From assembly GCA_964247055.1 (NCBI GenBank), contig OZ176057.1, positions 2,232,001-2,296,000 of the forward strand: a DNA stretch of 64,000 bases, given 5' to 3'. The first letter of the stretch is position 1, and every line of letters starts with the position of its first letter. This document shows positions 4,957-28,125 of the stretch, in pieces. Under the pieces are notes generated by a model. That model was given only the letters and a program-made list of their open reading frames with translations, searched no databases and was not told where the DNA came from. The position numbers and the translations under genes are program-made. The stretch comes from Paragordius varius (Eukaryota > Animalia > Nematomorpha).

Positions 4957-6731
4957 TTAATGATAGGCCATAGCAATATATTTCTTAATTTTGTATTTTA
5001 ATTTTGATAAATATCCATCATTCTTATGATAATAATAAAAAATTGATTCTTTTAAAAATTTGGGGAGAGGGACGTATTCTATAAGATCATCAATAAAACC
5101 ATTGTATTTTGTTGTAGACGCAGTCAAATGGATCCCGGAATCTTTCCTTGGAGGACAAACGTAATCCAAAGCTTCTGATATGCGTTCCATGATCCAATTA
5201 GCATAACTGTTGGATGTTGCAGTCGTATGACTATTTTTAAATCCACTGGCATCAATTACATAATCTTTCGCACCTACAACGTAATGACCAACCCTATCTA
5301 AAAGAGCTTGGGCATCTTCAGCACTTGCTGTAGATAAGCGTCTGGCCGTTTCAACCAACATGTTGGAAACAAATGTCAAGTACTCTTTGCTATTGTAGTA
5401 CGCTTCTGAGGCAAAATTTTCTTTGCTACTTCCCGAATCAAGTAAATGGGAAAAATAGTCACTTGCCTGCCCCAATGAATCTCGAACCCCACCCAACACT
5501 TTTGCAACGTATTCGGAATTTTTTTCATCATGATTGTGATAACCAGTTAAAGAAGCAAGCTTTTCTGCAGCATCCTTGAATGTATTACTTGCACTCTGGT
5601 AAAAAGTTGATGGATGCCTATGTGCTAAATAATCTGGGTAAACAGCATCAATTAAACCATCTTTAATATCTCCCAAAGTATCGTATGCTTGTTGGGCAAA
5701 TGTTTTATCAGCTCGAATCCCACCTGGGTGCATAACATTAGCTAATTTATCTTTCATATGTTGATAATGTGTTTGGGAAGTGTGAAAATATCCATTCTTG
5801 TGATTATATGGAGATATGTACCCACGCAATCCAGTTAAGTATTGACCGGCTTGATCTATGATACTGTAGGAATCCTCAAGACCGGCATTAGCCAATTTTC
5901 TACCCGCTTCAGAAATCATGTTAGCCGTAGATTCAATGTAATCGCGTGTGTCATACAATGACTCAGATAATGAGACTTTTGCTCTTTCTTTTTCGTCCCG
6001 CATGACTTTCGCAAAATGTTCACTAACATCAGAGATTGAATCTCTCGCGCGATCAAGTATACCCTTCTTTTCTTCAAAGCTCACAGCCTTCGATAATTGA
6101 TCAGAGGCCCGTAAAATTGTATCTTTGGCTCGTCCAAAAAACGTTGTTTTATGATATGGGTAAAATTGCAGAACGAATTCTTCCAAATTGTTCCAGGCAG
6201 TACCAAATGCGTCCCCTATTCCAGACAATGATGATTTATGAGAGTGAGGTAAAAATGTATCTTTAACATTCTCAAAAAACGTAGGTTGTGTATTATAATT
6301 CTTCCCGTATTTTTTTAGCCCCAAAAGGTAATGAGTAACTTGGTCGACCAAAACTTTTCCATCTTCAGCAGCAGCGTTAGGGAGCTTTTGGGACGCTTCT
6401 TTAAGCATGGCAAGAGTGGCATCCAAATATGCTTGGCTATCATAATAAGATTTGTAAGCTTGATCGTTAATATGTTCTGAGATGTGCTGGGGAGCATGAC
6501 CAATTATTTTAGTACGTAGGTTATCAATTGTTTGTCGAATGTGCTGTTCCGATGAATCTGCGTTGGATTTCAAAAAGTGTCCGGTATCCTCAATAGCTTC
6601 CTTAACCCGTTCATAGTAATTTGGTGAATTAGGATATATAGCATCCATAATATTATCTTTCAAATGACTCATTTCGTATAGGGTCCGTTGATATAAAGTT
6701 TTGTTCGGTACCATCCATGGAAAGTGTTTAC
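4957..6731 (-). CDS. Exon 14 (terminal) of lactamase/His-rich repeat giant protein; 3 diverged repeat units
   Basis: 585-aa ORF; acceptor tttataAG|GT at 6733-6732 (phase 1) gives GKHFPW, paralogous to the GDHFPW starts of the upstream modules. Confidence 0.85.
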
Positions 6732-6862
6732 CTTATAAATTTTAAAAAATAAAAACTAATTTAAAAAATAAAAAAAGTCTTAAAAATCGAAAAGTTTCAA
6801 GGTAACATCCATATTTAAATCATATATAGAACACACAAAAAATAAGATCTATCAAAACTTAC

Positions 6863-8665
6863 TAAAATATTTTTCAATAGTTTCAGCATATGTGGGTTCG
6901 TGTTTATGTCCGACAATATAATCCTTGGCACCAATCATGTAATCTCCAACTTGCTCCAAAATGGCTTTAGTTTCGTCAGTGGTGGCGTGAGATAACTGTT
7001 TGGCAGCTTCCATCATCATGACCGCACTATGATCCAGATATGCTTTCGAGTCATAATAGCTATCACTGATAACTTGGCCCAATGAATTTCGATGCTTTTT
7101 ATGCTTTATGAGATCCTTCAAATAATCGCTCGAATCAATTATTGAAGATCGAGATTTTTTCACAATATCCTTGATTTCTGAGAGCGATGTAGCTTTAGCC
7201 AAATCATTAGCATGTCGAATCACAGCATCTCGAGCTTGTTCATAGTAGCCTGGTTGGTGGGGTTTAAGAGAATCGACGAATTGGAGAAAGTATGATTTCT
7301 GCCTTGGATGTATGACTCCAAGAACTGTCTGAGAAAGGCCATCAATGAGATGTTTGGAGTCGTCAACACCCTCTTGTCCAAGATGTTTGGCTGCATTTAT
7401 TATAGCGCTAGCTGTAGATTCGAGATAATCAGCTGATTGATAAAAGTTATCTGTGATAGAATGTGCCAAACTATGTTTATTATGAGGATCAAATACCTCT
7501 TTGAAATAATCACTTGCATCGATCAAACTATTTCTGGTATTGTCAAGAATATGCTTCATATCATGGTGCGATTTCGCACCTTGTAATGAATTAGCAGCTT
7601 TAATAAGGGTAGCGCGTGCATTATCATAAAATGATTTTCGATGATGCGGATAAATGACGTCAAGAATGTTATCCTTTGTATCTTCGAGATATCCAGTGGT
7701 TTTTTCCCATAAGGTTGGTTCATGCTTGATTAAAGACTGAAGAGAATCTGGAAGAGACTTAATGTAATCGACATCAAAATAATTATGTTTGGTTTTATGG
7801 AGATGAGGAACGAAAGCAGAAAGTCCCAATAGATAATTAACGCTTTGGTCTATTATATGATTAACGTCTTTATCTGCATTCTTGGTGAAATGTCTGGCTG
7901 CATCAAGCAACATTGTCGGGGTGTTTTCTAAATAATCTCGACTGTCATAATAAGCATCTGATATGCGCTCCGATAGGCTGGGATGATGGTGGGAATGAGA
8001 AATTATCTTCGTTAAATAATCATTAGAAGATGCTATACTCTTTCTTGCACGATCAAGAATGTGTTTTATATCGCTTTCTTTATTAGTTTTAGACAAATCG
8101 TGAACTGCCTGATTTAAAACTCGCTTAGCATTTTCGTAGTAACTAGGTGGGTGTGGTTTAAACATAGTATGAATATGACTTTCAATTGGTTCCAAGTAAT
8201 GCGTCAAATACTCGACAAGTGCCGATGCATCTTCGTTAGTAGCCTTAGGTAATCGATGAGCCGCGTCTAAAATAGTGGCTTTAGTAGCTTCAAGGTAGGC
8301 GGCAGGATTTTCTTTCAAAAGTTTACTTAATTGCTCAGTTAAAGATGGACTACTTGATTTAAAACCAGCGCTTAATATAGCATTTTTTAATGGCTGAATG
8401 TATTCATGCGCTAAACTTCTCGATTTACCACTATAAAGTTTATTGGCAGTTGATAAAATTGCAGCTAAAGCTATATTATTGTAACCGTGATGCCCTGATT
8501 CACCCCATAATGTGTTCCAAGCTGATTTCAACATACTTGGTTTTTCCGTTGTAAATGGGATATGATCGCTAATCCATTGTTTTGCTTCCTTTGTTTCCGG
8601 AATATAATCAACGGTTCGTTCATATAGGGATTTTTGTCGTGAAGTAAGCCATGGAAAATGATCAC
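6863..8665 (-). CDS. Exon 13, repeat module C (1803 nt, phase 1-1)
   Basis: Open frame; acceptor ttttAG at 8667-8666, donor GTAAGT at 6862; ~95% identical to 12596-14395. Confidence 0.9.
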
Positions 8666-8879
8666 CTAAAACAAATGTATAAAAGTGTTAATAATATAAT
8701 AATTATACATGTAACAATTAAGCAAATCTGTTGTAAAAATAAAATTAGACAATGTTCCAAATATGTGGAGCTAATTTTTTAATGTGTAAAATCAGTCAAT
8801 CATCAATAAAATGCTTTGTTTGGTATAATAGAAAATCAGACTTATTACTACCAAGTTTTGATTAAAAATAGTTTCATGC

Positions 8880-10300
8880 AATTACGTATGTGAGACTGTC
8901 GATTATTATCGGTTTCAAGTATCATGATGAAATTTCATTGTCATACGATCAATATCATTAAAATAAAATTAATCCTTTTTGAGTTATTAGGGACTTTTTA
9001 GTGTTTGACTCTGATTAAAGATGGATATATATTAGTAACATATCTAAAGAGCTAGGGAACAAGGTTTGTGGGTTAGAAATAGTAAACTACATAGAAATGC
9101 ATGGTAAAAGATAGTAGAATAGTAGAAATAGCAAAAGAAATTTGGAGAACTTGTAAAGCATTGATAAAAATAAATTATAAAGTCGAGTTTATAAATTATA
9201 TTTGGTTAAAAAAATGCAGAAAATGTAAAATAAAAAAACCAAAATGGGATTTAATAAGGTTTATAAAGAACTAGGCAAAGATAAAGGAGGTGTTTGTATG
9301 TGTCAAGGTAAGCAAACGTGACAACGGCAAAACTATTTATTGGCAAAAATATGATATTTAACTTATAGAAATAATACGAGTTTAGTGAAGGATGCGAATT
9401 TACCAATTCTCACTCAAAGCAACAACAACCATATCAATTGACTTTTATATCTATTTGAAATGTTTTTGATACAATGCTAGAAAGGGAATTTGGTGTTGCT
9501 AAAAAAGGAAAGGGGGTAGAAGATTATATTTGGTTGCGATCCATATAATGAACATTTAATCAAAGTAAAGATCAGGTTTTCGATGATTTTAAATTAAGAA
9601 ACAAGCTACAACTCTTACACCATTATTCTGCTCATTTGTATCAATGTGATTTCTGGTTGGTAAGGAACGTTTTTTTATTCTGATGATCTTATTCATTTTT
9701 CTGAAAGTTTACTATTTAAACCAAATGTTAACAACTGGTTAAAAGGTTATCCAATTGTGAGTTTAGATAAACAATAGGAAAATTGAGTTTGTAGCTTTAA
9801 CATGTATTGAACGAATTTTAAATTTATGAGGAGAGAATCGGATTAAAATTATTAAAACTTGAGCGCAGTGTGCGCTGATGACAGCTGATATATATAAAAT
9901 TAAGTGTAGCTAACAAATAAAAAATGTTTAAAATAGGTTGTAGGGTGAAGCTTATGAGAGGTATGATTAAGCTGGCATTGAAATAAATATCGAAAGAGTT
10001 ATTGTGGTAGCGGAGATGGCATTTAGGCTGATGAGTGGACGAGCAAGGATAAAGTTAATTATAATGCAGTTAAAAAGTTTGTATGAAATTGGGGATAAGA
10101 GAGGGAGATGATATTATAAAGAAAGATTTAAAAAAATGGAATTCAGAAGAGTGAATATAAGGACAATTTAGGATAAATTTGGAGTGATGGTATGCTACAA
10201 ATTTATTATACTTATATTAAATAAATATTTTTTTCAAAGATGTATTAAACGGTGGAGAGCAAAAAATGTTCATGAATCATATATCATTCAATAGTTAAAA
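8880..10300 (+). mobile_element. Highly degenerate non-LTR (LINE) reverse transcriptase remnant in intron
   Basis: Fragmented motifs in RT order: IDF..K(C)FDT (~9437-9470), FNMY (9796), (C)ADD (9871-9882); many stops. Confidence 0.45.
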
Positions 10301-10405
10301 GCAGAATAATGAATATCGAATGGTGAATGCGGTTGAAAAACTCGATTTTTTTTTTAATTTTGGATATTACCTCAACAAAAATAAGCATTTTTATCGCACG
10401 TCAAG

Positions 10406-11002
10406 TATACCGTTTGCACTTCAAGGTCCTTGAACACTTCAAGTTGGTCCTTGAACGTTTCAAGTTGGTCTTTGAACATTTCAAGTTGGTCCTTGAACAC
10501 TTCAGGTTGGTCCTTTGACTTTTTTGTTTTGTTTTTAACTTTTATCAATCAAATCGTTATTTTATTGTTTTTTAACCTATTTTCTATTATTTAACATAAA
10601 TTTTAAATCGATATCAACTTTTAATCTTTAGGAAACCGTATATCCTTATTAATTTCTTAAAATAATTTTGGATATTTTTAAGATTTAACACGAACTGAAA
10701 AAATATATAAGTTTTCTGGGTTATTAATTAAAATTTTTTATTAAAAACATTTAAAAGTCAATAATTTTGTTCAATTGAAAAAAAATAGTTTAAAACAAAA
10801 AAAATGGTTTTTCAATAAAATTTTTTATTTATAAATGCAAAAATTATGGTTAAATAAAGAATTAGGTTAATAAATAATAAAATTAAAAAATAAATGCAAA
10901 AATTATGGTTAAATCAAAATTTATAAATTTTAAGAACCAACTTGAATCGTTCAAGGACCAACTTGAATTGTTCAAGGACACTCTTGAAGTGCAAATGGTA
11001 TA
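10406..11002. mobile_element. MITE, TACC(A/G)TTT terminus, 21-bp subterminal repeats (ttcaagttggtccttgaacac)
   Basis: TIRs tataccgtttgcacttcaag / cttgaagtgcaaatggtata; TA at both ends; related decayed copy at ~52565-53070. Confidence 0.8.
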
Positions 11003-12595
11003 GATACAAGAGAAGAAAACGCGTCTGCAAGCAGTTTAAAAATTCTAAATTTTATCAAAGATTATATAAATCAAAGCTAATCGCACTTTGGCGATCTATA
11101 TAAAAACTTATTATGGCAAAATATAATAATTTTTATTAAAGAAATTAAGCTGAAATGCGTACAAATATAAAAAATATATATTTTAATTTTCGACTTTTAT
11201 AGTAAAGTCTTTATCGAAAAAATCTCAATTTTAATATAATAATTTTTTTGTCATATATTTACTATATATTTTTGGACTTTAATTTGCTTCAAGCCTTAAA
11301 CATTTTAAGTTGGTCCTTGAAAACTTTTATTTTATTTTTAACATTATAATCAAACCTTGTATTACTAATGCATCCTATCATTATTTAATGAGTATCATTT
11401 TTCCCGAAAACCTATATTTATTTATTTTTTGCAAATATTTTATCGAAAAATTTTTACGCGTAATTTATTAAATTTTAAGTATAGTATAAATTGCATTGTT
11501 AATAACAAGGTTATATTGTTAATGTGCAAATACTATAAATAAAGATATTAAGTTAAAATAAAAAAACAATTACATACAAAAGTAAGGCTGCAAACAAACT
11601 CAAAACTTAAGGACTAGCCTTACCTGAAGGACCAACTCGAAGTGTTTAAGGACAATTTTATGGTATACACATTATTAACGAAAAACAGGAAGACGACATA
11701 TTCAAAAATTTATCCGCATTTTTCCAAATTAGCTATCGAGAGAAAGTATAAAAATTTATTACTTAATTTGTGCCAGAGTTCAAAGCCCGAAACTACGCAA
11801 TTTTTCTATCATCACTGTCAGCCCTGGGCAGGCGAGTGTTAAGGGCTTCACAAGTCCGGATACAATTTAAGTCTCTACCCTTTAATAAAAAAAGAAAAAA
11901 GAGACTCCAAACTGTAAATTTTTTTGAAATTTTACGTTCCAATTAGCAATCACCATATATTTTATAATAAAGCTTGGGTTGTTATAAATTTGATGGATGT
12001 TACGTGTATTCTTGGTTTAAAAGTAAACCATTTATTAAACGGTGAATTCAATATGTTTTAGTGCGTCCACAAAAATATATCCTGATGATATATAAATATT
12101 TTGATAAGAAAATGTATCTTGAGTATCATGGTGCTTTTGGCCTTTACGAATCAAAAGAAGTTATCTGCACTTTGTGGCAATGCTCCATATCAAAAAATGG
12201 CAAAATCTGCGCACATTTTAACTAAATTTCGAATTCTAGATAAGTGTGTTCAACACGCGGTCCTTTAAATATTTGCGGTCTGAGAATAATTAATACAAAA
12301 TCTTATGAAATCTAAGAAAAAAAATTTCTTAGACAAATTTTCTGAGATTTTTTTTTGAATTTTGGCAATGAACCAGAAAAAATGTTAAAAGATAGTTGTT
12401 GCTTACGTTTAAAATCCAATTAAATATTTGTTAATACCCATAAATTATCCAAATGCGGTCCGCAAAACCATTTATGCTGTACACCTCTTTTCTGGAGTTA
12501 GCAAATGACATGACTCTAATTTGCGAAATTTTTCATAACAATTAATTTGAAAATCAAATAAAATATTAAATAACCATAATTGGATTTAAATTTAC

Positions 12596-14395
12596 CAAAA
12601 TATTTTTCAATGGTCTCAGCATATGTGGGTTCGTGTTTATGTCCGACAATATAATCCTTAGCACCAATCATGTAATCTCCAACTTGATCCAAAATGGCTT
12701 TAGTTTCGTCAGCGGTGGCGTGAGATAACTGTTTGGCAGCTTCCATTAACATGACCGCACTATGATCCAAATATGCTTTTGAGTCATAATAGCTATCACT
12801 GATAACTTGGCCCAATGAATTTCGATGCTTTTTATGCTTTATGAGATCCTTCAAATAATCGCTCGAATCAATTATTGAAGATCGAGATTTTTTCACAATA
12901 TCCTTGATTTCTGGGAGCGATGTAGCTTTAGCCAAATCATTAGCATGTCGAATCACAGCATCTCGAGCTTGTTCATAGTAGGGTTGGTGGGGTTTAAGAG
13001 AATCGACGAATTGGAGAAAGTATGATTTCTGCCTTGGATGTATGACTCCAAGAACTGTCTGAGAAAGGCCATCAATGAGATGTTTGGAGTCGTCAACACC
13101 CTCTTGTCCAAGATGTTTGGCTGCATTTACTATAGTGCTAGCTGTAGATTCGAGATAATCAGCTGATTGATAAAAGTTATCTGTGATAGAAAGTGCCAAA
13201 CTATGTTTATTATGAGGATCAAATACCTCTTTGAAATAATCACTTGCATCAATCAAACTTTTTCTGGTATTGTCAAGAATATGTTTCATTTCGTGGTGCG
13301 ATTTCGCACCTTGTAATGAATTACCAGCTTTAATAAGGGTAGCACGTGCATTATCGTAAAATGATTTTCGATGATGCGGATAAATGACGTCAAGAATGTT
13401 ATCCTTTGTATCTTCGAGATATCCAGTGGTCTTTTCCCATAAGGTTGGTTCATGCTTAATTAAAGATCGAAGAGAATCTGGAAGAGACTTAATGTAATCG
13501 ACATCAAAATAATTATGTTTGGTTTTATGGAGATGAGGAACGAAAGCAGAAAGTCCCAATAGATAATTAACGCTTTGGTCTATTATATGATTAACGTCTT
13601 TATCTGCATTCTTGGTGAAATGTCTGGCTGCATCAAGCAACATTGTCGGGGTGTTTTCTAAATAATCTCGACTGTCATAATAAGCATCCGATATGCGCTC
13701 CGATAGGCTGGGATGATGGTGGGAATGAGAAATTACCTTCGTTAAATAATCATTAGAAGATGCTATACTCTTTCTTGCACGATCAAGAATGTGTTTTATA
13801 TCGCTTTCTTTATTAGTTTTAGACAAATCATGAACTGCCTGATTTAAAACTCGCTTAGCATTTTCGTAGTAACTAGGTGGGTGTGGTTTAAACATAGTAT
13901 GAATATGACTTTCAATTGGTTCCAAGTAATGCGTCAAATACTCGACAAGTGCTGATGCATCTTGGTTAGTGGCCTTAGGTAATCGATGAGCCGCATCTAA
14001 AATAGTGGCTTTAGTAGCTTCAAGATAGGCGGCAGGATTTTCTTTCAAAAGTTTACCTAATTGCTCAGTTAAAGATGGACGACTTGGTTTAAAACCAGCG
14101 CTTAAGATAGCATTTTTTAATGGCTGAATGTATTCATGCGTTAAACTTCTCGATTTACCACTATAAAGTTTATTAGCAGTTGATAAAATTGCAGCTAAAG
14201 CTATATTATTGTAACCGTGATGCCCTGATTCACCCCATAAAGTGTTCCAAGCTGATTTCAACATACTTGGCTTTTCCGTTGTAAATGGAATATGATCACT
14301 AATCCATTGTTTTGCTTCCTTTGTTTCCGGAATATAATCAACGGTTCGTTCATATAGGGATTTTTGTAGTGGAGTAAGCCATGGAAAATGATCAC
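12596..14395 (-). CDS. Exon 12, repeat module B (1800 nt, phase 1-1)
   Basis: 633-aa ORF; acceptor attAG at 14397-14396, donor GTAAAT at 12595; lacks one codon (QPYY vs QPGYY) relative to modules A and C. Confidence 0.9.
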
Positions 14396-15699
14396 CTAAT
14401 ATGAATTGAATATGCATAAATAAAAATATATATTAATAATCCATGTTTAAATAATATTTGAAATTTTATTTATTAAAAATATAAAAAATATAGCTAATTT
14501 TTCAATTAAAATACACATAATTTATTTAAGGTAAATTTGAATTGTTTGAGGTGAATTCGAATTGTTCAAGGGTCAATACGAATCGTTCAATGAATTCGAA
14601 GTGTAAATGGTATCAATACGGATTTAATAAAAGACTCTTTAAAGAAAACATACTCTGTATTTTATTATTAAATTGCTTGTATATACATAAAATTTTTATC
14701 CAAGGTGCTTTTAATAAAAAAAAGATAAGATTTTTCCTAATTAAATATAAGGCATATATATTTGTGAAAATAAGGTCAAGGGAAAAATTGCTCGACAAGG
14801 AATCCCAAAAAGTTTAAAGAAACAACTTTGAGACATATACCAAAGTTAGCACGTATAATTAAGTTGGATAACATGAATGCGAAATTGGATTGAAAGATAA
14901 AAAAAAGCGCAAAGAGAATATTGAGTAGGTTTTATAAGCACAATTCAGATAACAAATTCGTCCATATCTCTAAATAGGATTCATAATTTGGATAAACTTT
15001 GGGTTTCGATTGTAATAATTAAATATAACCGGCTCTTAACAAACAAAGGATCAGGAATTGTTGATTGTCTACTAGGAATGTTATTTAACTTTAACTAAAA
15101 ATGACAGAACATTACAATAATTGATCAAATAATAAATCCATTTTATGAATTTATATAATGTTATAAGATGAATGAATCCAATTTTAAAAATTACCAAGCT
15201 AGAAGCCAAAACGGAGCAAGGGATCTATATAAACCTGATAGTAGAGAATACGTATGAAACAGATAATGGAGTAACAACTCATTTATGCTTACTAAATATT
15301 GATGATATGACGAAAGAAACTGTGCACTTAGACTAATACCAATTAAGGCAGTTTATAACCAAGATTGGAATATACAAGTGGCAGGATCGCTATTAGAAAA
15401 GAAAAATAGCGTATCTACAATACTTGGTTTGATCTTCAAACAAATTACAAATCTTAGCAGATGAAAAATTATTTAAAAGAGGACAATATACCCAGTGCAA
15501 ACAATAAAATATCGAGAAATTTAGAATTCATATGACGCACACAAAAAGAACCTTTTATGCTAAAGAGTCGACCCCATATCGAAAAATCACAATATTGGCT
15601 CTTATTTATATAATAACGTTTAATTCTAAAAGTTTTATATAAAATAAATAAAAGAACCCGAATTATCTGCATAAGAGCTCCAAAATTTGGAATATTTTC

Positions 15700-16237
15700 A
15701 AAAAACGTCCACTCAAGTATAAGAATTCAAAATAAAACAGTACAAATTTTTTATACACGACACCAGATGTCAAAAAAAGAAAACAAAAAACAATATTTTT
15801 GGTTTCATTTTGATATAGAAGTTATTTTCCAGAATAAAATATGAATTTTAAGATTTTAATAGTAAATGGTAGTAAAGAATTAAAAAAAAACTAATTTAAT
15901 ATAATTTCATTAAATTTTTTTGTCTTTTAAGTGTGATAAAAGAAAAACGCCATCTTTTGAACCTGAAATTTTATAGAAACCCTAACTATATGATTTTAGG
16001 CTATTTATATATTGAAAATATCTCCTAAGATAATAAACGATAATATTTCAGATTTTATCATTATTTTTTGAATTATCCTTAATTATGCATAATTTTCACT
16101 TTTTGCCCGATTTCGATTTTCTCTCAATATTTCAAAAACTAGGTTGTCAACAAATAAAAATTTGCGGCAAATGAATACGCTGGTCTTAAGCTATCTCATG
16201 AAAAAAAATTTCGTTAAAAATATTTTTGCACACAGTA
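15700..16237. mobile_element. One arm of long-TIR element, homologous to ~45850-46332
   Basis: Shared blocks ccctaactatatgattttaggctattt, gcggcaaatgaat.cgctggtc and end tttttgcacacagTA. Confidence 0.65.
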
Positions 16238-16580
16238 TATATACGATTGCACAATCGACGAATTATTATGAATTCCAAAAATGATTAAAACGCTGGAGCC
16301 TCCCAATTACGTTTAATATGTTTAAAAATGCTTTATAATGCGATTATAAATTTTAGCATTGTGTAGAAAATAATAATAAAACATTTTAAAACAGTTGGAA
16401 ATTTTTATGACCCCAGTGAAAATATATAAACTTGAATACCGATTGGTCCCTTTAGGCTTAAGTTTTATTATTTGAAAAATACTTTGGCAAATAACATCTA
16501 ATGAAAGTGATGATAAAATGATGACTTAATATCTTTTAATATTATAAATATTTAAATCAAGTTAACATAGTAATAATTAC

Positions 16581-19500
16581 CAAAATATTTTTCAATAGTT
16601 TCAGCATATGTGGGTTCGTGTTTATGTCCGACAATATAATCCTTGGCACCAATCAGGTAATCTCCAACTTGCTCCAAAATGGCTTTAGTTTCGTCAGTTG
16701 TGGCGTGAGATAACTGTCTGGCAGCTTCCATCAACATGACCGCACTATGATCCAGATATGCTTTCGAGTCATAATAGCTATCACTGATAACTTGACCCAA
16801 TGAATTTCGATGCTTTTTATGTTTTATGAGATCTTTCAAATAATCGCTCGAATCAATTATTGAAGATCGAGATTTTTTCACGATATCCTTGATTTCTGGG
16901 AGCGATGTAGCTTTAGCCAAATCATTAGCATGTCGAATCACAGCATCTCGAGCTTGTTCATAGTAGCCTGGTTGGTGGGGTTTAAGAGAATCGACGAATT
17001 GGAGAAAGTATGATTTCTGCCTTGGATGTATGACTCCAAGAACTGTCTGAGAAAGGCCATCAATGAGATGTTTGGAGTCGTCAACACCCTCTTGTCCAAG
17101 ATGTTTGGCTGCATTTACTATAGTGCTAGCTGTAGATTCGAGATAATCAGCTGATTGATAAAAGTTATCTGTGATCGAATGTGCCAAACTATGTTTATTA
17201 TGAGGATCAAATACCTCTTTAAAATAATCACTTGCATCGATCAAACTTTTTCTGGTATTGTCAAGAATATGTTTCATTTCGTGGTGCGATTTCGCACCTT
17301 GTAATGAATTACCAGCTTTAATAAGGGTAGCGCGTGCATTATCGTAAAATGATTTTCGATGATGCGGATAAATGACGTCAAGAATGTTATCCTTTGTATC
17401 TTCGAGATATCCAGTGGTCTTTTCCCATAAGGTTGGTTCATGCTTGATTAAAGATCGAATAGAATCTGGAAGAGACTTAATGTAATCCACATCAAAATAA
17501 TTATGTTTGGTTTTATGGAGATGAGGAACGAAAGCAGAAAGTCCCAATAGATAATTAACGCTTTGATCTATTATCTGATTAACGTCTTTATCTGCATTCT
17601 TGGTGAAATGTCTGGCTGCATCAAGCAACATTGTTGGAGTGTTTTCCAAATAATCTTTGCTATCATAGTATGCATCTGTGATGCGCTTAGATAGAGTGGG
17701 ATGATGATGGGCATGAGAAATTACTTTTGTTAGATAATCGCTGGAGGAAGTTATGCCTTTTCTGGCTCGATTTAGAATGCTTCTTATATCGCTTTCTTCG
17801 TGGACATTTGATAAATCATGTACAGTTTTTGCTAAAACTTCTTTGGCATTATCGTAATATGTTGGTTTATGAGAATGAAATATACCCTGAACATCATCTT
17901 CAATTGGTTCTAAATAATGTGTTATATATGTAACAAGGGTGGATATATCTTCATTCGTAGCTTTAGGTAGTTTATGGGCAGCATCTAATATGGTTGCCTT
18001 TGTCGCTTCAAGATAAGCCGCAGGATTTTGATGAAATAGCTCAGCTAATTGTTTAGTAACAATAGTATTGGATGATGTTAAGCCGGCTTTTGCCAATGCT
18101 CTCCTCAAAGGCTTAATATAGCGTGAGAAATCGCTGCTACCTTTACCTTTGTACAATTCATTAGCTGTTGACAATATTGCAGCTAGTGCCATGTCACTAT
18201 TTATTCCGTGAGAATTTGATTCTCCCCAAATTGTATTCCAAGCAGATTTTAATATGCTTGGTTTTTCAGTTGCGAAAAACTGCAAGTGATCATTTACCCA
18301 TTCCTTACTTTGGGAAAGAGTTGGTATATTAGATTTCTCATGATATCCTATTATATTGGAAAAATAGCCATGTTGTTTATGATGTATATGTGGCAGATAT
18401 TGTTTGACGCCAACAATATATTTACCCACTGTGTCCAATATATTACGCATATCATCATGACTTGCTTTAGCTAGAGCTTTGTTAGCCTCGTTCAACATCT
18501 CCCATGTGGACTCTAAATATTCCTGGCTATTATAATATGATTTAGAAATACTTTTTGACGCATCTTTTAACAAATCGCTGTGAGACACAATCACATCCCG
18601 AGCTTGTTTATATGCGTCCCGTACATCATCAGATGTAGGACTCTTGTCCTTTAGTGTATGAGCCATGTTGGAAACTAAGCGTGCAACTTGATCACTGTAA
18701 CTATCTTTGTGAGGCCAAAGAGATTCATGAGCCAGGTGACCAATATGTTCAAAAAAACTTTCTTTGTGCATGCCAGGAATGTATTTTATTAGGCCTGACG
18801 CATAATCAAAAACTTGATTGACTAAATTTTGAATGTCGCTAGAGCCCGCGTCTGATAATCGTTTACCCGCTTCAACTAGCATAGAAGCTGTATTTTCGAC
18901 ATAATCTTTAGTATCAAAATAGGCATGTTCACTTTTTTCAAGTAAAGCTTTTTGGATATTTTTAAGCTTTTTGATTGTCTCTTGATCCGCATTATGTTTG
19001 CTATTGTGATGGAGAATTTCGTCAATATTGGTAACTAATGATTTCCGATATAAATTAATTATTTTATTTAAATCTGACCCAGATTTGGCATTAGTTATTT
19101 CATGAGCAACTTGCTTTATCTGATCGGTAAGAGAATGGGGAATGGTGATTGAGGCTTGATGCTTAACATTAGATATTATGTCATCAAACATCCCTGAGCC
19201 CCCTTTGAGATTAAATTGTGGTAAATGACTTTGGTGATAAGGTATAAGGCCGGTCAAATAATGGGCTAAACTATTTACTAATGCCGAGACTTGATCATGT
19301 TTCAAACTACTTCCTTTTTTACCATATCCTAGTTTGTGACTAGCTTCAATTATGGCATTTGCTGTTGTGTGTAGGTATTCAGGCGATAACAAATATTCAT
19401 CATGTTTTCCATGTAAACTTTTTGCCTTGTGTAATAAAGCCTTAAGAGTTGGTTCATGGCTAAAAGTGTCCCTGAGTCGTTTAATAGTATTTTGTAGCTT

Positions 19501-19832
19501 TTCTTTATCAGCATGTGATAGAGCTGATATATCTTTTGAAGCTAATTTATGACTAAAATCTTTTAGATCATGTGATGCCGTTTCAATCAGGTGTATGAGA
19601 GAAGGGGTAGCATGAATAAATGATTCATCGGAGATGCTATGTCTTTTTTGAGTTACGTCATGATGAATATCTTCGTATCCATCTATGGTACGCGTCAATG
19701 TTGATAAAGATGGAAATCTACGTATACCCATTATGTATTCAAACGCTAGAGCTATTAAGGGGACGACATGCGTTGGATGGTGAGATAAATCTGAAATTTG
19801 TTTGCCCACAGAATGTGTTAACTCTGTCACAC
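16581..19832 (-). CDS. Exon 11 (3252 nt, phase 1-1): 3 diverged repeat units plus module A
   Basis: 1107-aa ORF; acceptor tctAG at 19834-19833, donor GTAATT at 16580. Confidence 0.9.
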
Positions 19833-20115: not shown

Positions 20116-20675
20116 CTCTCAAATATTCCGGACTTTGGAAGTAATGCTTGAGTCCATCATAATCGGCCCCATGTTTAAAATGTTCCAAGTAATAATCTTT
20201 GTAATCGTGCTTTCCGTGTTTGGGAGCAACAAATAAATGTGCCAAAGTATCGCGCAATTTTGATAACTCCTGATTTTTTAACTGAACATCTTTGTGATCC
20301 ATATGAGCATGTCCATTTTGATCCTTATATAATAGAGACAATGCCTTTTCCATTTCTTGCGGTGTTTTATAGTGTTCAGCTGTGTTGGCTAAATATGTTT
20401 TAAAGTCTTGCAATGTTTTAACATGCATTTTATCTGGAGGTGGATGAAGGTTTTCCTGACTACCTGATTTTAGTCCAAAAAATGATAAAATCACATCGTA
20501 TAGTGGGATGCCCTTAGATTTCGTATGTTGTGTCAAATCATTATACTGATAAGCAGTTGGAAGTTTACACGCCCTTTGTTGATTTGTATCCATATATGTT
20601 GAATACAATTGGGATATCAAATTATTTTTAAAATCTTCTGGTCCATTACTTTGTGCGATTGCGGGTATGGCATGC
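20116..20675 (-). CDS. Exon 10, His/Lys-rich linker between lactamase domain and repeats
   Basis: 195-aa ORF; acceptor ttttttAG (phase 2) and donor GTAGTG (phase 1) match both neighbouring exons. Confidence 0.8.
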
Positions 20676-20747: not shown

Positions 20748-20929
20748 CCCTGGCCACATGGTGTTTGATTTAGGGCTTTATAGAGTGCTTGAACAACATT
20801 CACGCCACGTCTATCATTAAGTTGATCATTGGCTATTGTGTTGGTGAGATAGGCATAGGATAGGCCAGTATCGCTATCAGCAAACGCTAATTGTAAACCA
20901 TGCCCAGGAAAACCAAAACTAAGTTTGCC
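20748..20929 (-). CDS. Exon 9, beta-lactamase-like C-terminus
   Basis: GKLSFGFPGHGLQLAFADSDTGLSYAYLTN resembles the family FGHxG...AFADP..GLsFAYvmN motif; phase 0 acceptor, phase 2 donor GTAATA at 20747. Confidence 0.88.
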
Positions 20930-21481
20930 CTAAAAAATAGAGTTTTTAAATCAATATAAATTTACAGAGTTAAAAGTATAGAGAAGAGATATGAAAAATA
21001 AAAGAAAACCATTATTATCCTTGATTTTTACGAAACTACTTATATGTTTACAACTGTCAGATACAAAGGAATAAACATGATATTGGTAAAACATTCATTT
21101 AATATTTCACAAGGTTGTGGAAAAATTTTTAGTTTAAATAAAAAATAAACATTATTTTGTATGTTGTCTTTATAATTTATATTTTACTGTAGTTATGCAA
21201 TTAATAGTTACGGTGGACTTTCCGTCCCCTAACAATGATTCCTTTTGTGAAAACATATACATATCACATTTTACGCATCCTGACCATCTTTTAATCAAAA
21301 ATTTTTGGTCAAAGAATACAAAAATTACTAATATTTTATAGATCTTACAAAAAATATTTAATCAGTATATAGGCACTGTTTATAGGAAAAGGCTAATTAT
21401 CGGAAAAAGAAAGGGTTACTATGGAGGGCTCGCTGTATAAATAACTTTTACATAAAAAATTGAACATAAAAAAAGACTCAC

Positions 21482-21603
21482 ATAAGGATTTGGTATTAAA
21501 ATGAATCCAGTTGCCATACCGAAATTGTACATGTCCCCAAAAATGGCATCAATTTCACAAGGGGATGAAGTTTCTTTAACCATGTATTCAAGCAGTTCTG
21601 GTT
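21482..21603 (-). CDS. Exon 8, beta-lactamase-like
   Basis: (K)PELLEYMVKETSSPCEIDAIFGDMYNFGMATGFILIPNPY; AG acceptor and GTGAGT donor, phases 1/0 consistent with neighbours. Confidence 0.82.
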
Positions 21604-22370
21604 CTATACAATGTCATATAATTAAATTATAGAATTATTTTTTACATAAAAACACCTATATAATTAAATGATTAAAACGAAATGCGTATTTAAATAAGGA
21701 ATGAACAATTTCTCTCAAAAATTCCGTTTAATAAATAAAATGTATTAAATCTTTATTATTAATACATATACTCTGATTATAAAGTCACTGAAAATTTTAA
21801 GATAGATGTTTTTATAGAAGATTAGAATTTGCAACTAAATATTAGTATAAATTTTGTGGTTATTAATGAAAAGACTATATAAAGTTAATTTATAGAACTT
21901 ACCTTAATAACATGTAGTTTTTGATGAATGTCACTTGGAACAAACAATCGAATGTTTTATAAATATGTCTTAGTATAAAATGGTTGAAATTGCTTATTAT
22001 AAATATTTTCAATCTTAAAACTTATTTCCTTTCGTAGAAAAAGTAGTTTAATATAAAAACTATAATCCTGTTTTGTAAACTCTGTACACCGCGTAATGAC
22101 ATTAAAAAACAATAAAAGTAAGTTTGACGAAAGCATTTCATTTAAGTGATGATCCTTAAATAAACGCAATTAGAATAACTTACCATATACTTTTGAAATT
22201 CAAAGGCTTGGCTACTCTCTGCAAAAGATTCGGTAAATATAGCCTAATTTTTGGAATTGTTAATAAATTTTCAACTATAAGTGACATGAATTTATTTTAG
22301 AATGGGGGTTTAAACAAAAAAACGCCTTTAACAAATATCAAAAAAGTAATAAAATTAAATTATATCTAAC

Positions 22371-22515
22371 TTATCAGAGTTTTATCGCCTTGGGGTGATG
22401 CCGCATTAGCTAAAATACCATACAATTTAGCTAAACTCCTGGCATCTCCGATCCCAATAACGCTAGGAAATTGTAGGGCACGAATTTCGGGTTTATTTAG
22501 AGCCATACTGTGGGA
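22371..22515 (-). CDS. Exon 7, beta-lactamase-like
   Basis: SHSMALNKPEIRALQFPSVIGIGDARSLAKLYGILAN resembles family N.PEvr.aeiPa.nGig.ARslAklYg.Lan; phases 0/1. Confidence 0.88.
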
Positions 22516-23684
22516 CTAATGTAATGGATAAAATATATATATATATATATTTGCACAATTTGCAAAAAGAATGGTAAAAAAAGACTTAAAATCTGGAAAT
22601 CTATCGATAAGTTATATATGTTTTTGATTAAAAATAACAAAAAATTATTATATTTATTTGAAAATATTATAATTATTGTTATATACGGGTAGAAATTCCC
22701 AAAATTGCAAAAATCTTACTTAGTTTATAAGGAGTTTTTATAATGTAATTTGTCGATTTTTTGTAATCAAAACCATATTTTCAGATTATTACTTTCCCTA
22801 TATAATTTATACAATGGGGTTAGTAGACCCAAACTCAATAATTAACAATACTCTAAACTTGGTTAGAAGTAAAATAATAAACGAAAACAGATTAAGTTAT
22901 ATAGCATATATGCATCTTACAGCAAATAACATTAATTTTAAAAAAATTAGTTTAAATACTACTAATATTAGGGCAAAATTTTTCGAATTCTACATATCAT
23001 TAAATAATGGGCCCCTTAAACGATACTTATAATTCAAATTTATGCATTTTATCAACCAATAAAACATTAAATGCCAAAAATTCAAATATATAATAAAATA
23101 TTAAATTCTTCATAAAACATATTTCCTGCTATTTTTCGTTATTTTAATTATGAAATCGGTATTTGACATATGCGATATTTTACAGTCCACAATATTGTTA
23201 AACAAATAATAGAGAAAAACTATGCAGAAAAAGTAAAAAGGTAAATAAAAAACAATTATAATATAATTTTTCTAATAAAAATGTTTTATCCGATACTTTT
23301 TACTTAGTCGTTTTAAAATCATTTTAGTTGTATCAGAGTTCAATATATAAGATATCACAATATTTCTAAGTCTTATATACTCCATGAAATCAAAACGTAT
23401 TAGGTTATAAAAAAGGTATAGAACAAATAGAAGGATGAAATATATTTTGATACATTGAAAAAACGGCTAATTTTAAAAGTGGAAATCAAATTATTCACGT
23501 TATATATATATTATTTAAAATACATTCTTTAGAGTACTTTCTGCCCAAGATTTAAATAAAAAAAAATCTTATATAAATATTAATCAAAAAACAATTATAA
23601 AATAATTTATTATAGAAAATTGAAAAATGAAACTAAAAGTGTGATTATTGTTTTATGAAAAAAAATTGACTATTTTGGACTTAC

Positions 23685-23863
23685 TTTGACTATGAAATCG
23701 GGGTTAGACATAGCCCGTTTAGTTGCATCGTTATGATAAACCATAAGTCCAAACTTAAGTTTTTGCCATAGGCCAGGTAAAGTTTTAAACATTCTTTCAT
23801 TCCGTAACGTTGCGACGCGACTGTTAAGATCCCGGGAACGAAGTCCAAAATAATAATCTAAAT
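23685..23863 (-). CDS. Exon 6, beta-lactamase-like
   Basis: DLDYYFGLRSRDLNSRVATL...AMSNPDFIVK; donor GTAAGT; phases 1/0. Confidence 0.85.
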
Positions 23864-24480
23864 CTATATTTGATTTGAGATAAATAGTGATAAAATAAGA
23901 GTTAAAAATAATCCTTTTATAAGGAAAATTATATAACTTTATTATTTCTATTTATTAAACCTATTTTGGGTTATAAAATTTATTAAAATTAATTTTTATT
24001 TCAAAAATTATATGATGTATTCAATATGAAACATGATTTAAAAATATAATTTTTTTCTAAAGTAAAAAATAAGTAATAAATTTTTTTGGAAAAACGTAAA
24101 TTTTAACTTTTTTTATATCGATACACCCCTATCGTTTTAAGTTGTAAAATGATAAACTCATTTTATATTATCTAAATTTTAATCAAATGAATTAATATCA
24201 CATATTGCTTAAGTATCTCTTTAATTTATTATAGAACACAAATGTAAAAATATTATCAATATTTAGCTTTTTTTAATGTTTCGAAAGAGTTTAAAAAAAT
24301 ACCAATTAATAATAAATCTTTTAGAGCTTTCATTAATTGATATTGAAAAATATAATAAATTATAACTGTAAAATCAAAAAATTTATATAAAAAAGTAGAA
24401 AATAAAAAACCTTAATTCGAAAAATAAATACATATTAATTTATATCACTTAACAAAGAATTGAAATTAAAAAATTATTAC

Positions 24481-24590
24481 CATATTTTTTGGCAATTTCA
24501 TCCTCGAAATATTTTGCAAGGGAACGATGTTTTGAATCGATTCTACGGATTAGTTGATCGACATATAAACCATAGGTGAAAACATGATAT
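24481..24590 (-). CDS. Exon 5, beta-lactamase-like (catalytic Tyr motif)
   Basis: GYHVFTYGLYVDQLIRRIDSKHRSLAKYFEDEIAKKY; phases 2/1. Confidence 0.9.
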
Positions 24591-25068
24591 CTAAATAATA
24601 ATTATAAATATTGATTTATTTTAAATACTAATTTCGCATTGATTATCCTACTATTTATTTAATAAATAAAACCAATTTTTCATAATTACAGGATATTTTT
24701 AAAATGTTGTTTAGGTCCATTTGAAATGAACAACATTTGATATATAATGATATTTTTTTAAAATGTTGTTTAGATATGTTCTTGATTCAAAATTTTATCG
24801 CTTTTATAAAAGAAATATTAAATATATTTAGAGTGGGTCAACGAAAGTGTTAATTTTAAAACTTTAAAATTTTATTTCTCTTAAAAATATATAATTATGA
24901 ATAGATATAAAAGAAAGTATTTCTCATATATGAACAATAATATAATATGTGAAAAAAAATAATTTCAATACAAAAAACAATACTTTTAATGATGCATAGT
25001 CATAATTAGATAATAAATAGGAGCTAATTTAAAAAATTCCAATATATTATATAATAAAAATATTAAAC

Positions 25069-25229
25069 CCTCTTCTTTGACCCGCTCCCCAGGCCGGTTT
25101 TTGAGCTGCCAATATTCGACTTAATTGATTATCGAGCGTTTTAACGTTATTTTTATCGGACCACAAACTATTTTCTTGTAACATTTTAACTGTTATACGG
25201 TTTGATTTATCAATGTATGGTATACCTGC
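25069..25229 (-). CDS. Exon 4, beta-lactamase-like
   Basis: AGIPYID...ILAAQKPAWGAGQRRG, completing LLTHR-AG; phases 0/2. Confidence 0.88.
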
Positions 25230-25230
25230 C

Positions 25231-25265
<35 letters not shown>

Positions 25266-25328
25266 CCAAACTAAAAATAATTTTTATTTAAACAAAAAAA
25301 CAATTTTTAAAGAAACTTTATCATTTTA

Positions 25329-25625
25329 TATACCATTTATAGTTCGAATTCACCCTCGAACAATTCAAATTCACCCTATTATTAGTTAAGATTAAAAATT
25401 ACATATGTTTTTTTATATTTTAAAAAATATGAAATTACGTTTAAAATTAATATACTACTGAAATAATAAACTATGCCATAAGAATATATTTCTTATTATT
25501 GATGAGTTATATTAGTTCTTCGAAAAGAAATAATATACTTTTAGGGTGAAATTGTTCTAGGGTGAATTTAAAATCGAGGGAAATTTAGAATCGTTCAAAG
25601 GTAAATTTGAATTGTAAATGGTATA
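25329..25625. mobile_element. MITE, TACCATTT family (aattcaccctcgaacaattc repeats)
   Basis: TIRs tataccattta / taaatggtata with 19-20-bp tandem subrepeats. Confidence 0.82.
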
Positions 25626-25901
25626 CATTGTTTTAAGTTGCAATTTATGAAATGTAGCTGTAAATAAGTACCCTAAAATATACATTTAACAATCATGTAT
25701 TTAAATAAATATACGCTTTATCTTTATAATTTTAATATTTTTTAGTTAATATAGAATTAATATTAAAATAAAATCATATCTTAAAAAATTATGATTTTCT
25801 GATACGGGCCATCTAATTAATGGTAAATATAATCATTTGGGCTAAAACAATAAGTTTTTTACTTAAAATAATCTAATTATTAATTTAAATTTTATTATAT
25901 C

Positions 25902-26151
25902 ATACCATTTACAATTAAAATTCACCCTTGAACAATTCAAATTTACCTTTGAGCAGTTCAAATTCACCCTGAAATAAATTATGTGTTTTTTAAAAATAAA
26001 ATAATACTGAAAAAATAATAAATTATTCCATAAAGATCTATTTCATAATAAAAAATTATATTAGTTTTGAAAACATAAAATAGTTTTTTTAGGGTAAAAG
26101 TGAATTGTTCAGGGGAAAATTTGAATTTGAATGTAAACTGTAAATGGTATA
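25902..26151. mobile_element. MITE, same family
   Basis: ataccatttaca ... tgtaaatggtata. Confidence 0.8.
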
Positions 26152-26192
26152 CAACTATATATTTATGCATATAAGATATCTCAATAATAAAA

Positions 26193-26526
26193 TACCATTT
26201 ACAGTTCAAATTCACCCTTGAACAAATCAAATTCACCCTCGAACAATTAAAATTCACCCTAATAATAAATTATGTGTTTTCGAACTAATATAACTCATTA
26301 TTAATATAAAATATATCTTTATGGCATAATTAATTATTTTTTTCAGTGTTATTTTAATTTAAAACAAAATTTTATTTTTTAAAAATATATTAAAATATAG
26401 GTAATTTTTAATCTTAAAAAACATGTTATTTATTTAAGTGTGAATTTGAATCGTTTAAGGGTGAATTTGAATTGTTTAAGGGTAAATTTGAATTGTTTAA
26501 GGGTGAATTTAAACTGTAAATGGTAT
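26193..26526. mobile_element. MITE, same family, flanked by 26-bp direct repeat
   Basis: taccatttacagttcaaattcaccc ... gggtgaatttaaactgtaaatggtat. Confidence 0.82.
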
Positions 26527-27504
26527 ATATAAGATATCTCAATAATAAAATAATGCTTAAATTTTATATCATATTTTATCCAAAGCTAGACAAAAAAATT
26601 ATGTATTTTTACCATATTTAAAAATATAAATATAAAACAAAATATGTTTGTTTTGGCACAGTTTTAAACTATAACTTTTTTAGCTAAACTTATATGTATT
26701 AAAGATTGGGTAAATCCAATTTAAATTTATAATTTTAAGGAGAACACAGCCTTTTTAACAAAAAGTGCATTTAAATTCTAAAAAAAATTTAAAAATATTT
26801 TTCCAAAATTCACCTATCTATTAAATATATTTTAAAATTGTCACCTTGTTGCTTAAACAAGTCCTAACTCCATCATATCCCCCCCCCCTATTTTTTATAA
26901 ATTAACCATAAACAGCGCTAAAAACTAATAAGTTCAACAAATCAACCCTATATAAATTTTATATCATATTCGTTCAAATTAAAGAACACTTTCCTAAAAC
27001 CTAACTAGTTTCTTATGTACAGAATACTTATTTGAGCCAAAAATAATATAAAGTTTAATTTAATTCATTTTTTATTCATTTATTATATATATATATATAT
27101 TAAATATGTCAATTATATTATATAATTCCATTAAAATTAATATAAATAAAATTTTTAAATCAAAAAATTTAATTTATAACTATATATTAGGAAAATGTAT
27201 ATGATTAAATATAGTGACCCATGCCTTTTTTCCATAATCAAGGTCGTTACAGAGGAAAGGATTATATAATTTTCATAAGAAAGATGCAAAACATAAAAAA
27301 CTTAAATCAAATTTAAAAATGAAAAAAACTAAATCTCTGACTTATCATCTCCTAGGTAAAAGTAACATTAGTTTTACCCTTAACAACACAATAAAGGATA
27401 ATTGTAAAACAAGATAAAATTATCTTCATGAAAAGGATGCAACCAATTACAAAGATTTTTTTAATAAAATTTAAAATTTTCTATCTCAATAACATAGTTA
27501 TTAC

Positions 27505-27817
27505 CCTGTGCGTAAGTAAATGTTCAATCGTTATATTTTCTTTGCCATCATGATATTTCCCAAATTCGGGCCACCATTTAGCTATGGGGTCCTGTAATTT
27601 AGCTCCTTGATCTTGATTTTGACTTATCAAATGAGCCAACGTTATTGTACTCACACCCTTTGCAATAGATAGCGTATTAACTAACGTATCTTCAAGCCAA
27701 AAATCACGGTTCCGTTCATCCGAATACCCCGCCCATAAATCTATAATGGGTCGACCACCCAGGTAAGCGGAAAAAGCTGCACCCCCTTGACTTTCAAGCC
27801 CACGCGCAAAGTTTTGT
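27505..27817 (-). CDS. Exon 3, beta-lactamase-like/serine hydrolase with SxxK
   Basis: GAAFSAYLGGRPIIDLWAGY...DTLVNTLSIAKG...DPIAKWWPEFG...GKENITIEHLLTHR, typical of the class C beta-lactamase-related/EstA esterase family. Confidence 0.93.
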
Positions 27818-27826
27818 CTATAGTTA

Positions 27827-28125
27827 TATACCATTTACAATTCAATTTCACCCTCGAACAATTCAAATTCACCCTCAAATAAAATATGTGTTTCTTTTTT
27901 AAGATTAAAAAATACCTATATTTTATATATTTTTTAAAAAATAAAAATTTTGTTTTAAATTAAATAATACTGAAAAAATAATAAACTATACCATAAACCT
28001 ATATATTTCATATTAATAATGAGTTATATTAGTTTGAAAACGCATAATTTATTTTTAGGGTGAATTTGGATGTTCAAAGGTGAATTTGAATTGTTCAAGG
28101 GTGAATTTGAACTGTAAATGGGATA
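27827..28125. mobile_element. MITE, same family, abutting exon 3 acceptor
   Basis: tataccatttacaattc ... gaactgtaaatgggata. Confidence 0.8.

Follow-up and report, generated by a model that had tools for sequence, protein, structure and literature searches.

The 64,000-nucleotide stretch of the Paragordius varius genome analysed here (contig OZ176057.1, positions 2,232,001 to 2,296,000; hereafter the window) carries on its minus strand what appears to be a single gene for a giant membrane-anchored protein, the tail of which is a tandem array of helical modules. In gene order, a hydrophobic N-terminal anchor of ~20 residues is followed by a beta-lactamase-fold domain that resembles serine hydrolases (LACT type, after the invertebrate 'beta-lactamase domain-containing protein 2') and then by 18-19 tandem helical modules. 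The general kind is familiar, namely that of tandem helical-bundle repeat proteins, and orphan families are expected in an undersampled phylum; what would be new is an unnamed, hairworm-restricted helical repeat family as the tail of a giant LACT-type protein with an anchor. The best explanation as a whole, to which we give a little less than an even chance, is that the repeats are the tail of this one gene and act as scaffold-like beads behind the anchored head.

Repeat units

A hidden Markov model (HMM) built from three units of exon 13 (E13) and iterated on the six-frame translation found 18 units, its only matches in the window: seven in exon 11 (E11), four each in exon 12 (E12) and E13, and three in exon 14 (E14), at E-values from 1e-20 to 1e-43. 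An earlier reading made from the letters alone (the sequence-only reading) had counted about 18 copies with the same 7/4/4/3 split, and the open reading frames (ORFs) and derived splice sites return exactly the span, 4957-19832, in which it had placed exons 11-14. When all six frames of the 110.6-Mb assembly were searched with the unit profile, the same 18 places were the only matches; thus, the repeat family is confined to one gene of the P. varius assembly. Start-to-start spacing in the window is ~112-179 amino acids (aa). The period of 120-150 aa proposed earlier was roughly right, because units without the additional two-helix linker described below are about 115-135 aa; the longer units carry this linker.

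The consensus of ~170 aa was derived from 38 units that the profile assigns to the module, 18 from the window and 20 from an ortholog in the hairworm Gordionus. It comprises a core of four helices (A-D, ~110 aa), to which many copies add a two-helix linker (E-F, ~50 aa). Helix A is opened by Tyr-Tyr after Pro-His, helix B contains R-x-S and ends with SD-x-[FY], the B-C loop is basic and His-rich (KKHK, HSHHHP, HKKHR), helix C starts with YY-x-S-x-x-Y-[LI], and helix D ends with Y-x-x-G-x-K-x-Y plus G-x-H. In the many units that have them, E and F are shorter helices, each with a G-Y-[FL] start and a Pro-His close. Helices usually start after Pro-His with Tyr-Tyr or Tyr-Phe, one Tyr is invariant in the 18-unit alignment, and the His clusters sit in the B-C loop and in the stretch after helix D. 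Both motifs singled out in the earlier reading, the core YYdS.dYLe...Y..G and the preceding YYenAr...R.S...SDY, are seen in the unit alignment.

The unit HMM gives no match in exon 10 (E10). By eye on the separate exons, the 3' end of E10 (YFQSPEYL) resembles the start of helix C with a continuation in E11, and a degenerate 19th half-unit probably straddles the intron between them.

Gene structure

All exon borders from E10 to E14 are canonical GT-AG and all lie in phase 1 (Table 1). E11, E12 and E13 consist of whole codons (1084, 600 and 601, respectively), so that each could be skipped or duplicated without a break in the frame. Because of these phase-1 borders, the divisibility of E11-E13 by three, a Gordionus ortholog of the same architecture and a collinear C-terminus, we assign E10-E14 and the upstream exons to one predicted gene, with a product of about 3,500 aa as the sum of the exon lengths. 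The repeat region encoded by exons 10-14 accounts for the C-terminal ~3,060 aa. The earlier reading had made no link from the repeats to an anchor, a beta-lactamase-like domain or a hairworm ortholog. Within the intron between E13 and E14 lies a low-complexity stretch (6739-6778).

The coding nature of the repeats is borne out by their substitutions. The ratio of nonsynonymous to synonymous substitution rates (dN/dS) between the C-terminal module of E11, E12 and E13 is 0.19-0.24, with 0.19 for E12 against E13, and the repeat modules are under purifying selection. Given these ratios, and ORFs of 560-1,107 codons that stay open in AT-rich DNA (~30-35% G+C), E11-E14 are best read as real, constrained coding exons. 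For comparison, the reported G+C content of Gordionus montsenyensis is about 27%.

The Gordionus ortholog and the history of the units

A unit-profile search of 1.84 billion representative proteins produced three matches, of which one is a true relative. This sole relative found is the uncharacterised LOC135927324 of Gordionus sp. m RMFG-2023 (XP_065319358.1 / CAK9299969.1), which scored 2,248 bits over 21 matched stretches and has four predicted forms of 3,421-3,795 aa. The other two matches, to a bird Maestro/HEAT-repeat protein and to a low-complexity protein rich in Ala, Lys and Glu that has 0.4% His and belongs to no Pfam family, were rejected as chance. That no further relative was found argues only weakly for a restriction to hairworms, the protein library being one that lacks P. 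varius itself. The literature on Nematomorpha with cuticle or histidine, and on the Gordionus genome, yielded nothing on the repeat protein.

The Gordionus protein has the same anchor and PF00144 domain, followed by 20 repeat units. Overall identity to the window exons is 31-37%, reaching up to 57% for matching unit subtypes, and the two proteins share the Pro-His, Tyr-Tyr, R-x-S, SD-x-F/Y and Y-x-x-G-x-K-x-Y positions as well as the C-terminal tail. E14 is collinear with the last three Gordionus units and the C-terminus, where its tail motif VPLPKFLKE corresponds to IPLPFVKKE. Compared with those of the window, the Gordionus units are more regular, at 158 or 169 aa (158-170 aa over all 20), and almost every one has the E-F linker; the amplified blocks differ as well, and His amounts to 4.3% of the whole 3,795 aa as against 4.4-7.2% in the window's four repeat ORFs. 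Moreover, the Gordionus repeat region (aa 471-3795) is a single ~10-kb exon (39781-49755 of the Gordionus locus) joined to the enzyme-domain exons, whereas that of the window (4957-20675) is cut by four phase-1 introns, three of which fall at the same place in the module, within EKYF/G-DHFPW (slash, intron). Given one exon in Gordionus against four introns here, either the window lineage has gained the repeat-region introns or Gordionus has lost them, and their copying went together with that of the module.

Unit subtypes are common to both species; in the window module, for example, unit four is 53-57% identical to Gordionus units 11-17. The blocks that were amplified afterwards differ between the two lineages. 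Within the window, the last four E11 units together make up a paralogue of E12 and E13. This E11 C-terminal module (16577-18272) is 86.6% identical to both, and E12 and E13 (12588-14399 and 6855-8669) share 97.2% nucleotide identity over the exon only, with dS of 0.07. BLASTN found no alignment between the introns that follow them (about 3.8 kb after E12 and 2.1 kb after E13). This pattern suggests exon-restricted gene conversion between E12 and E13, or intron turnover after their duplication.

The beta-lactamase-like head

In the Gordionus ortholog, PF00144 scores 153.9 bits over residues 4-404 (cut-off 27 bits); the window's N-terminal exon pieces are tied to this domain by their tblastn alignments with that protein, with identities of 41-75% for the individual pieces. 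Among named proteins, the Gordionus head is closest to invertebrate 'beta-lactamase domain-containing protein 2' (LACT) and to bacterial serine hydrolases/esterases, with identities of 29-39%. As in LACT proteins, the S-x-x-K motif (SIAK) and the Tyr motif (G-Y-H) are retained (window 27508-27822 and 20753-20929, minus strand); the Gordionus head is 39% identical to an Asterias protein over 89% of its length, and some relatives likewise have an N-terminal hydrophobic segment. LACT proteins differ in that they stand alone, at about 390-440 aa, without a repeat tail; among the animals checked, the fusion of head and repeat tail was seen in the two hairworm proteins only. The third motif, nominally (K/H)-x-G, reads FGFPGHG in both hairworms as against FGH-x-G (FGHPG) in all relatives aligned, its His having been replaced.

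The anchor is a long segment with hardly any N-flank, and it contains no signal-peptidase-like site. Judged from its sequence, it could direct the remaining protein either to the outside or to the cytosol, the latter being the arrangement of microsomal P450s.

Composition and a possible role in the cuticle

His makes up 4.4-7.2% and Tyr 5.1-7.7% of the four repeat ORFs, which contain 0, 0, 0 and 1 Cys. The description of exons 11-14 as nearly Cys-free therefore stands, with a single Cys in 2,885 residues, and the ~39 His previously counted by hand in 560 aa are exactly 39 in E13. The accompanying claim of His-rich linkers between the helices holds in part: clusters do occur there (HSHHHP, HKKH, PHHR), but enrichment outside helices is only modest, at 9.1% His outside and 5.3% inside the long predicted helices of the E13 model (odds ratio 1.8, p=0.095). 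In the same four-unit model, 14 of the 32 Tyr residues of E13 lie within three residues of a helix N-terminus and only 2 lie mid-helix. A heptad-pattern reading would place several conserved Tyr residues on the core face, so that cross-linking is no likelier for them than a structural role in capping or packing.

Cross-linking would be central if the protein were an extracellular matrix or cuticle precursor, with a tail that is exported or shed and made insoluble via Tyr-Tyr, His-quinone or His-metal links. The hairworm cuticle is thick and fibrous, its protein components are unidentified, and other His/Tyr-rich, Cys-poor proteins of ecdysozoan cuticles and hardened tissues use such cross-links; an insect cuticle protein that is cross-linked during sclerotisation is said to be His-rich. 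A tail with 4-7% His, 5-8% Tyr and essentially no Cys, whose helices open with conserved Tyr pairs and whose loops contain His clusters, would suit this role, as would the confinement of the family to hairworms and a lineage-specific amplification of units that is typical of structural proteins. However, the protein has no cleavable signal peptide, and since a long hydrophobic N-terminal anchor with almost no N-flank can put the rest of a protein in the cytosol, this anchor could equally leave the tail there. A well-folded bundle with Tyr on its packing faces is, in addition, no obvious substrate for cross-linking, and quinone tanning would not be obligatory, because Gordionus specimens are described as unpigmented white. 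On balance, we consider a cuticle precursor unlikely, though it merits serious attention.

Predicted fold and charge

The AlphaFold model of a single unit (6897-7265, with the 18-unit alignment) is a helical bundle with a mean predicted local distance difference test score (pLDDT) of 84.9 and a predicted template modelling score (pTM) of 0.79. Helices span residues 7-24, 28-44, 47-53, 62-71, 74-91 and 96-110, four of them being main helices. The confidence of this model speaks for a repeated helical fold, as the sequence-only reading had supposed, and not for disorder. The helices are amphipathic, with hydrophobic moments (muH) of 0.26-0.47. When four units were modelled together (E13, with Gordionus segments added to the alignment), the pLDDT was 58.6 and the pTM 0.30, with helices A/B confident and the E-F linker at very low confidence; too uncertain for an assessment of unit packing, this model was left out of the fold search. 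These predictions fit units that behave as beads with undefined mutual orientation.

The isoelectric point (pI) is 6.4-7.5. By calculation, the repeat region has hardly any net charge at neutral pH and takes on a strongly positive one with mild acidification, gaining tens of positive charges per 1,000 residues from pH 7.4 to 6. For the Gordionus repeat region, the net charge is -11 at pH 7.4, +65 at pH 6.0 and +185 at pH 5.0.

Searches for a known family or fold

Pfam, PDB sequences, the ESM Atlas and fold searches gave no family, in keeping with the first description of the repeat as unrecognised; neither a confident match to a characterised family nor predicted disorder was encountered. In Pfam, there was no match above threshold for any exon or any single unit, and weak matches are dispersed among unrelated families of helical proteins. 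Feature searches of the ESM Atlas, whether with E13 or with a single unit, brought up nothing usable, and a word-index protein search with E13 found none among the only eligible proteins, those of 308-980 aa, so that it says little. In Foldseek against the PDB, the best matches of one unit were engineered cytochrome b562 variants (E=0.05), at a template modelling (TM) score of ~0.3 and a root-mean-square deviation (rmsd) of ~11 A. VIA-align against 48,161 chains reached a best Z of 5.5, and the ESM Atlas shape search reached TM of at most 0.46. For helical proteins, such values lie within noise.

The kinship with apolipoproteins or perilipins suggested in the earlier reading found no support, with Pfam scores far below the cut-offs. 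ApoLp-III (PF07464) scored 19.0 bits in E14 and 17.6 bits in E11 against a gathering score of 36.3, and PF01442 (ApoA1/A4/E) 12.4 bits against a cut-off of 90; perilipin had no Pfam match at E<=1, and the PDB entry for apolipophorin-III, 1eq1, met the unit profile at E=0.15. The fold of ApoLp-III is an up-down bundle of five helices, the unit model having four main ones. No apolipophorin or apolipoprotein appears among the Foldseek matches listed (49) or the VIA-align matches listed (50), a missing match being no proof of a different fold. The exchangeable apolipoproteins (PF07464, PF01442) and the perilipin C-terminal bundle are amphipathic bundles of similar size, Cys-poor and sometimes in tandem, but they show no significant sequence or fold match to the hairworm units and lack His/Tyr-rich helix caps. 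The hairworm units, for their part, have none of the Pro-punctuated 11/22-mer periodicity of apolipoproteins; they repeat at intervals of about 112-179 aa, and their loops keep fixed positions.

Even so, bundles of this type that open on lipid, combined with an esterase-like head, might make a lipid-droplet or transport protein in a non-feeding adult that lives on stored lipid. Such a function could draw on the amphipathic helices, on the ApoLp-III matches (E 0.0016-0.0045 on whole exons), on an N-terminal anchor compatible with targeting to the endoplasmic reticulum or to droplets, and on the inclusion of family VIII carboxylesterases in the PF00144 fold. Yet all of these matches are far under the curated cut-offs, ApoLp-III recurs in 2 of the 18 single units at E of at least 0.022, amid many random helical families, and the helices are no more amphipathic than those of ordinary bundles. 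Together with the missing periodicity and the fold searches, this leaves a lipid-associated function rather improbable.

HSP9_HSP12 (PF04119), for which the cut-off is 26.3 bits, is the top weak match in every exon at 20.1-24.7 bits, and none of the matched stretches is significant by itself. The aligned part is helix D in E13 and helices A/B in E14, and the Gordionus protein has a summed score of 127 bits with 0 significant stretches. Because the register is inconsistent between exons, the signal reflects composition, not homology. On these scores one could propose a stress protectant of the late embryogenesis abundant (LEA) or HSP12 type, disordered in solution and folding on membranes or on drying, for instance in cysts. 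The shifting register, the want of a significant single stretch in any protein, the confident compact fold given by AlphaFold and the conservation of hydrophobic core positions make this very improbable.

Nematoda is the sister phylum to hairworms, and its nematode polyprotein allergens (NPAs; ABA-1, gp15/400), which are small helical lipid carriers, resemble the present array in being tandem helical units of ~130 aa, in an ecdysozoan worm, that have been amplified lineage by lineage. A polyprotein cut apart into NPA-like proteins of about 15-20 kDa would account for the size of the units (about 112-179 aa), their helical nature and the ~20-unit tandem array, with cleavage at the basic clusters (KKHK, HKKHR) present in each unit. 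But these clusters lie in the B-C loop and not at unit borders, and they are not conserved as R-x-K/R-R (furin) sites; NPA/ABA-1 has no Pfam match at E<=1; and the array lacks a signal peptide and is fused to an anchored enzyme-like domain. We therefore give little credence to a polyprotein.

The closest functional parallel is with the talin rod, vinculin/alpha-catenin and spectrin repeats, in which consecutive bundles of 3-5 helices and about 110-170 aa form a scaffold on a functional head. By this analogy, the hairworm tail most plausibly works like rod domains of the talin/vinculin/spectrin type. The analogy does not amount to kinship: nothing speaks for homology or for cytoskeletal partners, and only isolated sub-threshold matches were seen (Talin_IBS2B in 1 unit at E=0.0038, VBS_C3G9 in 2 units, and TLNRD1 by Foldseek at E=0.16).

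A scaffold with responsive junctions

In the explanation that we favour, the tail would be a string of independently folded helical bundles on a membrane-anchored, enzyme-like head. If the helices of each bundle run up and down, the N-terminus, the B-C loop and the C-terminus would share a pole, so that the Pro-His, KKHK-type and G-x-H clusters would gather at the junction of successive beads. Because of these clusters, and because charge rises steeply on acidification, the junctions would be the likeliest place of pH- or metal-dependent stiffening, compaction or self-association, a notion close to the 'His hinges' of the sequence-only reading. The location of His clusters at helix ends and the near-neutral pI fit responsiveness to pH or metals, and the His/Tyr chemistry proposed in the earlier reading is plausible. 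That the tail is a scaffold or spacer with such junctions is a tentative proposal, which we would sooner bet against than for, while regarding it as a substantial possibility.

Several points weigh against this explanation. The splicing rests on sequence logic and the Gordionus ortholog, and the predicted fold draws on an alignment made up solely of paralogous units. The E-F linker, the would-be hinge, is modelled at very low confidence. The up-down packing behind the argument for a His pole is not secured, because the model superposes poorly on canonical four-helix bundles (TM ~0.3, rmsd ~11 A), and the enrichment of His outside the helices is weak (p=0.095). Finally, the head may be altered or inactive as an enzyme, since its third catalytic motif is changed in both hairworms.

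A bolder version of the scaffold explanation holds that this new hairworm fold family is a histidine-gated material, in which ~20 membrane-tethered beads stick or stiffen at their His junctions when pH falls or when Zn, Cu or Ni is supplied. We think this improbable. If true, the histidine-gated chain would be a switchable fibre, adhesive or cuticle component, and as a helical material it would differ both from the disordered Gly/His-rich proteins of annelid jaws and from the beta-sheet suckerins. The probability left over from the readings discussed here belongs to something not considered.

Coordinates and other features of the window

Table 1. Positions in the window of the repeat gene and its parts (slash, exon border in splice sites)
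Feature	Position	Strand	Length and frame	Acceptor	Donor	Basis or remark
Long ORFs	16552-19875, 12516-14417, 6852-8534, 4957-6714	-				ORF list
Exons 1-9, approximate	20753..30400	-				Nine pieces; tblastn with the Gordionus N-terminal 560 aa
N-terminal hydrophobic anchor MTILITSISVLLAAILFFYIPKFYE	about 30326-30400	-				tblastn piece
Beta-lactamase-fold pieces	27508-27822, 25068-25229, 24458-24589, 23679-23948, 22396-22515, 21485-21607, 20753-20929	-				tblastn
Exon 10	20117..20675	-	186 aa		G/GTAGTG	His/Tyr-rich linker from enzyme-like domain to repeats; ORF and splice borders
Exon 11	16581..19832	-	3252 nt = 1084 codons, phase 1 both ends	CTAG/GT	G/GTAATT	
Units of exon 11 (7)	19216-19608, 18760-19158, 18376-18717, 17872-18213, 17509-17877, 17002-17367, 16615-16983	-				Unit HMM
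Exon 12	12596..14395	-	1800 nt = 600 codons, phase 1 both ends	TTAG/GT	G/GTAAAT	
Units of exon 12 (4)	13884-14231, 13521-13889, 13014-13379, 12630-12998	-				Unit HMM
Exon 13	6863..8665	-	1803 nt = 601 codons, phase 1 both ends	TTTTAG/GT	A/GTAAGT	
Units of exon 13 (4)	8154-8501, 7791-8159, 7284-7649, 6897-7265	-				Unit HMM; 6897-7265 is the unit modelled
Exon 14 (last, with stop codon)	4957..6731	-		TAAG/GT		Three diverged units and C-terminal tail
Units of exon 14 (3)	6286-6636, 5797-6159, 5239-5622	-				Unit HMM

The introns of the gene contain short arrays of a 20-21-nucleotide tandem repeat (for example GGTCCTTGAACACTTCAAGTT) at 10425-10515, 10932-10988 and 14525-14590, and the frames 14530-14814, 25982-26269 and 27744-27959 all translate to an odd peptide (NCSRVNLNCKWY). 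The arrays and the common peptide point to a dispersed intronic repeat element of the P. varius genome. At 4900-8700, 16-81% of 31-mers occur in sequencing runs under five different organism labels, which could reflect several very close species or worm DNA in samples of other organisms, such as hosts.

Just downstream of the 3' end of the repeat gene, 1-1800 (plus strand) contains pol fragments in different frames, with a reverse transcriptase (RT; PF00078, E=2e-17) and an RT-associated RNase H (PF17919, E=1e-11), and is a decayed element of the long terminal repeat type. At the other end of the window, 58896-62460 (plus strand) includes an ORF at 60408-61880 with a weak match to the rhodopsin-family seven-transmembrane domain (PF00001, 28.5 bits against a cut-off of 30.5); given neighbouring hydrophobic ORF pieces, this region suggests a divergent G-protein-coupled receptor gene.

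Significance for hairworm biology

Nematomorpha are among the least studied phyla, and their structural and secreted proteins are almost unknown. The repeat gene is among the largest in its region of the genome and is conserved, with purifying selection, in two hairworms. Most of its product is a domain that databases do not recognise, fused to an enzyme-like head that stands alone in every other animal checked, and the gene offers a clean case of repeat amplification via symmetric phase-1 exons. If the module is a mere lineage-specific spacer, it would still be a useful unnamed family for annotating hairworm genomes. If it is a bundle that can be switched by pH or metals, protein materials would gain a new building block, and the module could also hint at a hairworm-specific tissue chemistry, for instance of cuticle, adhesion or storage.

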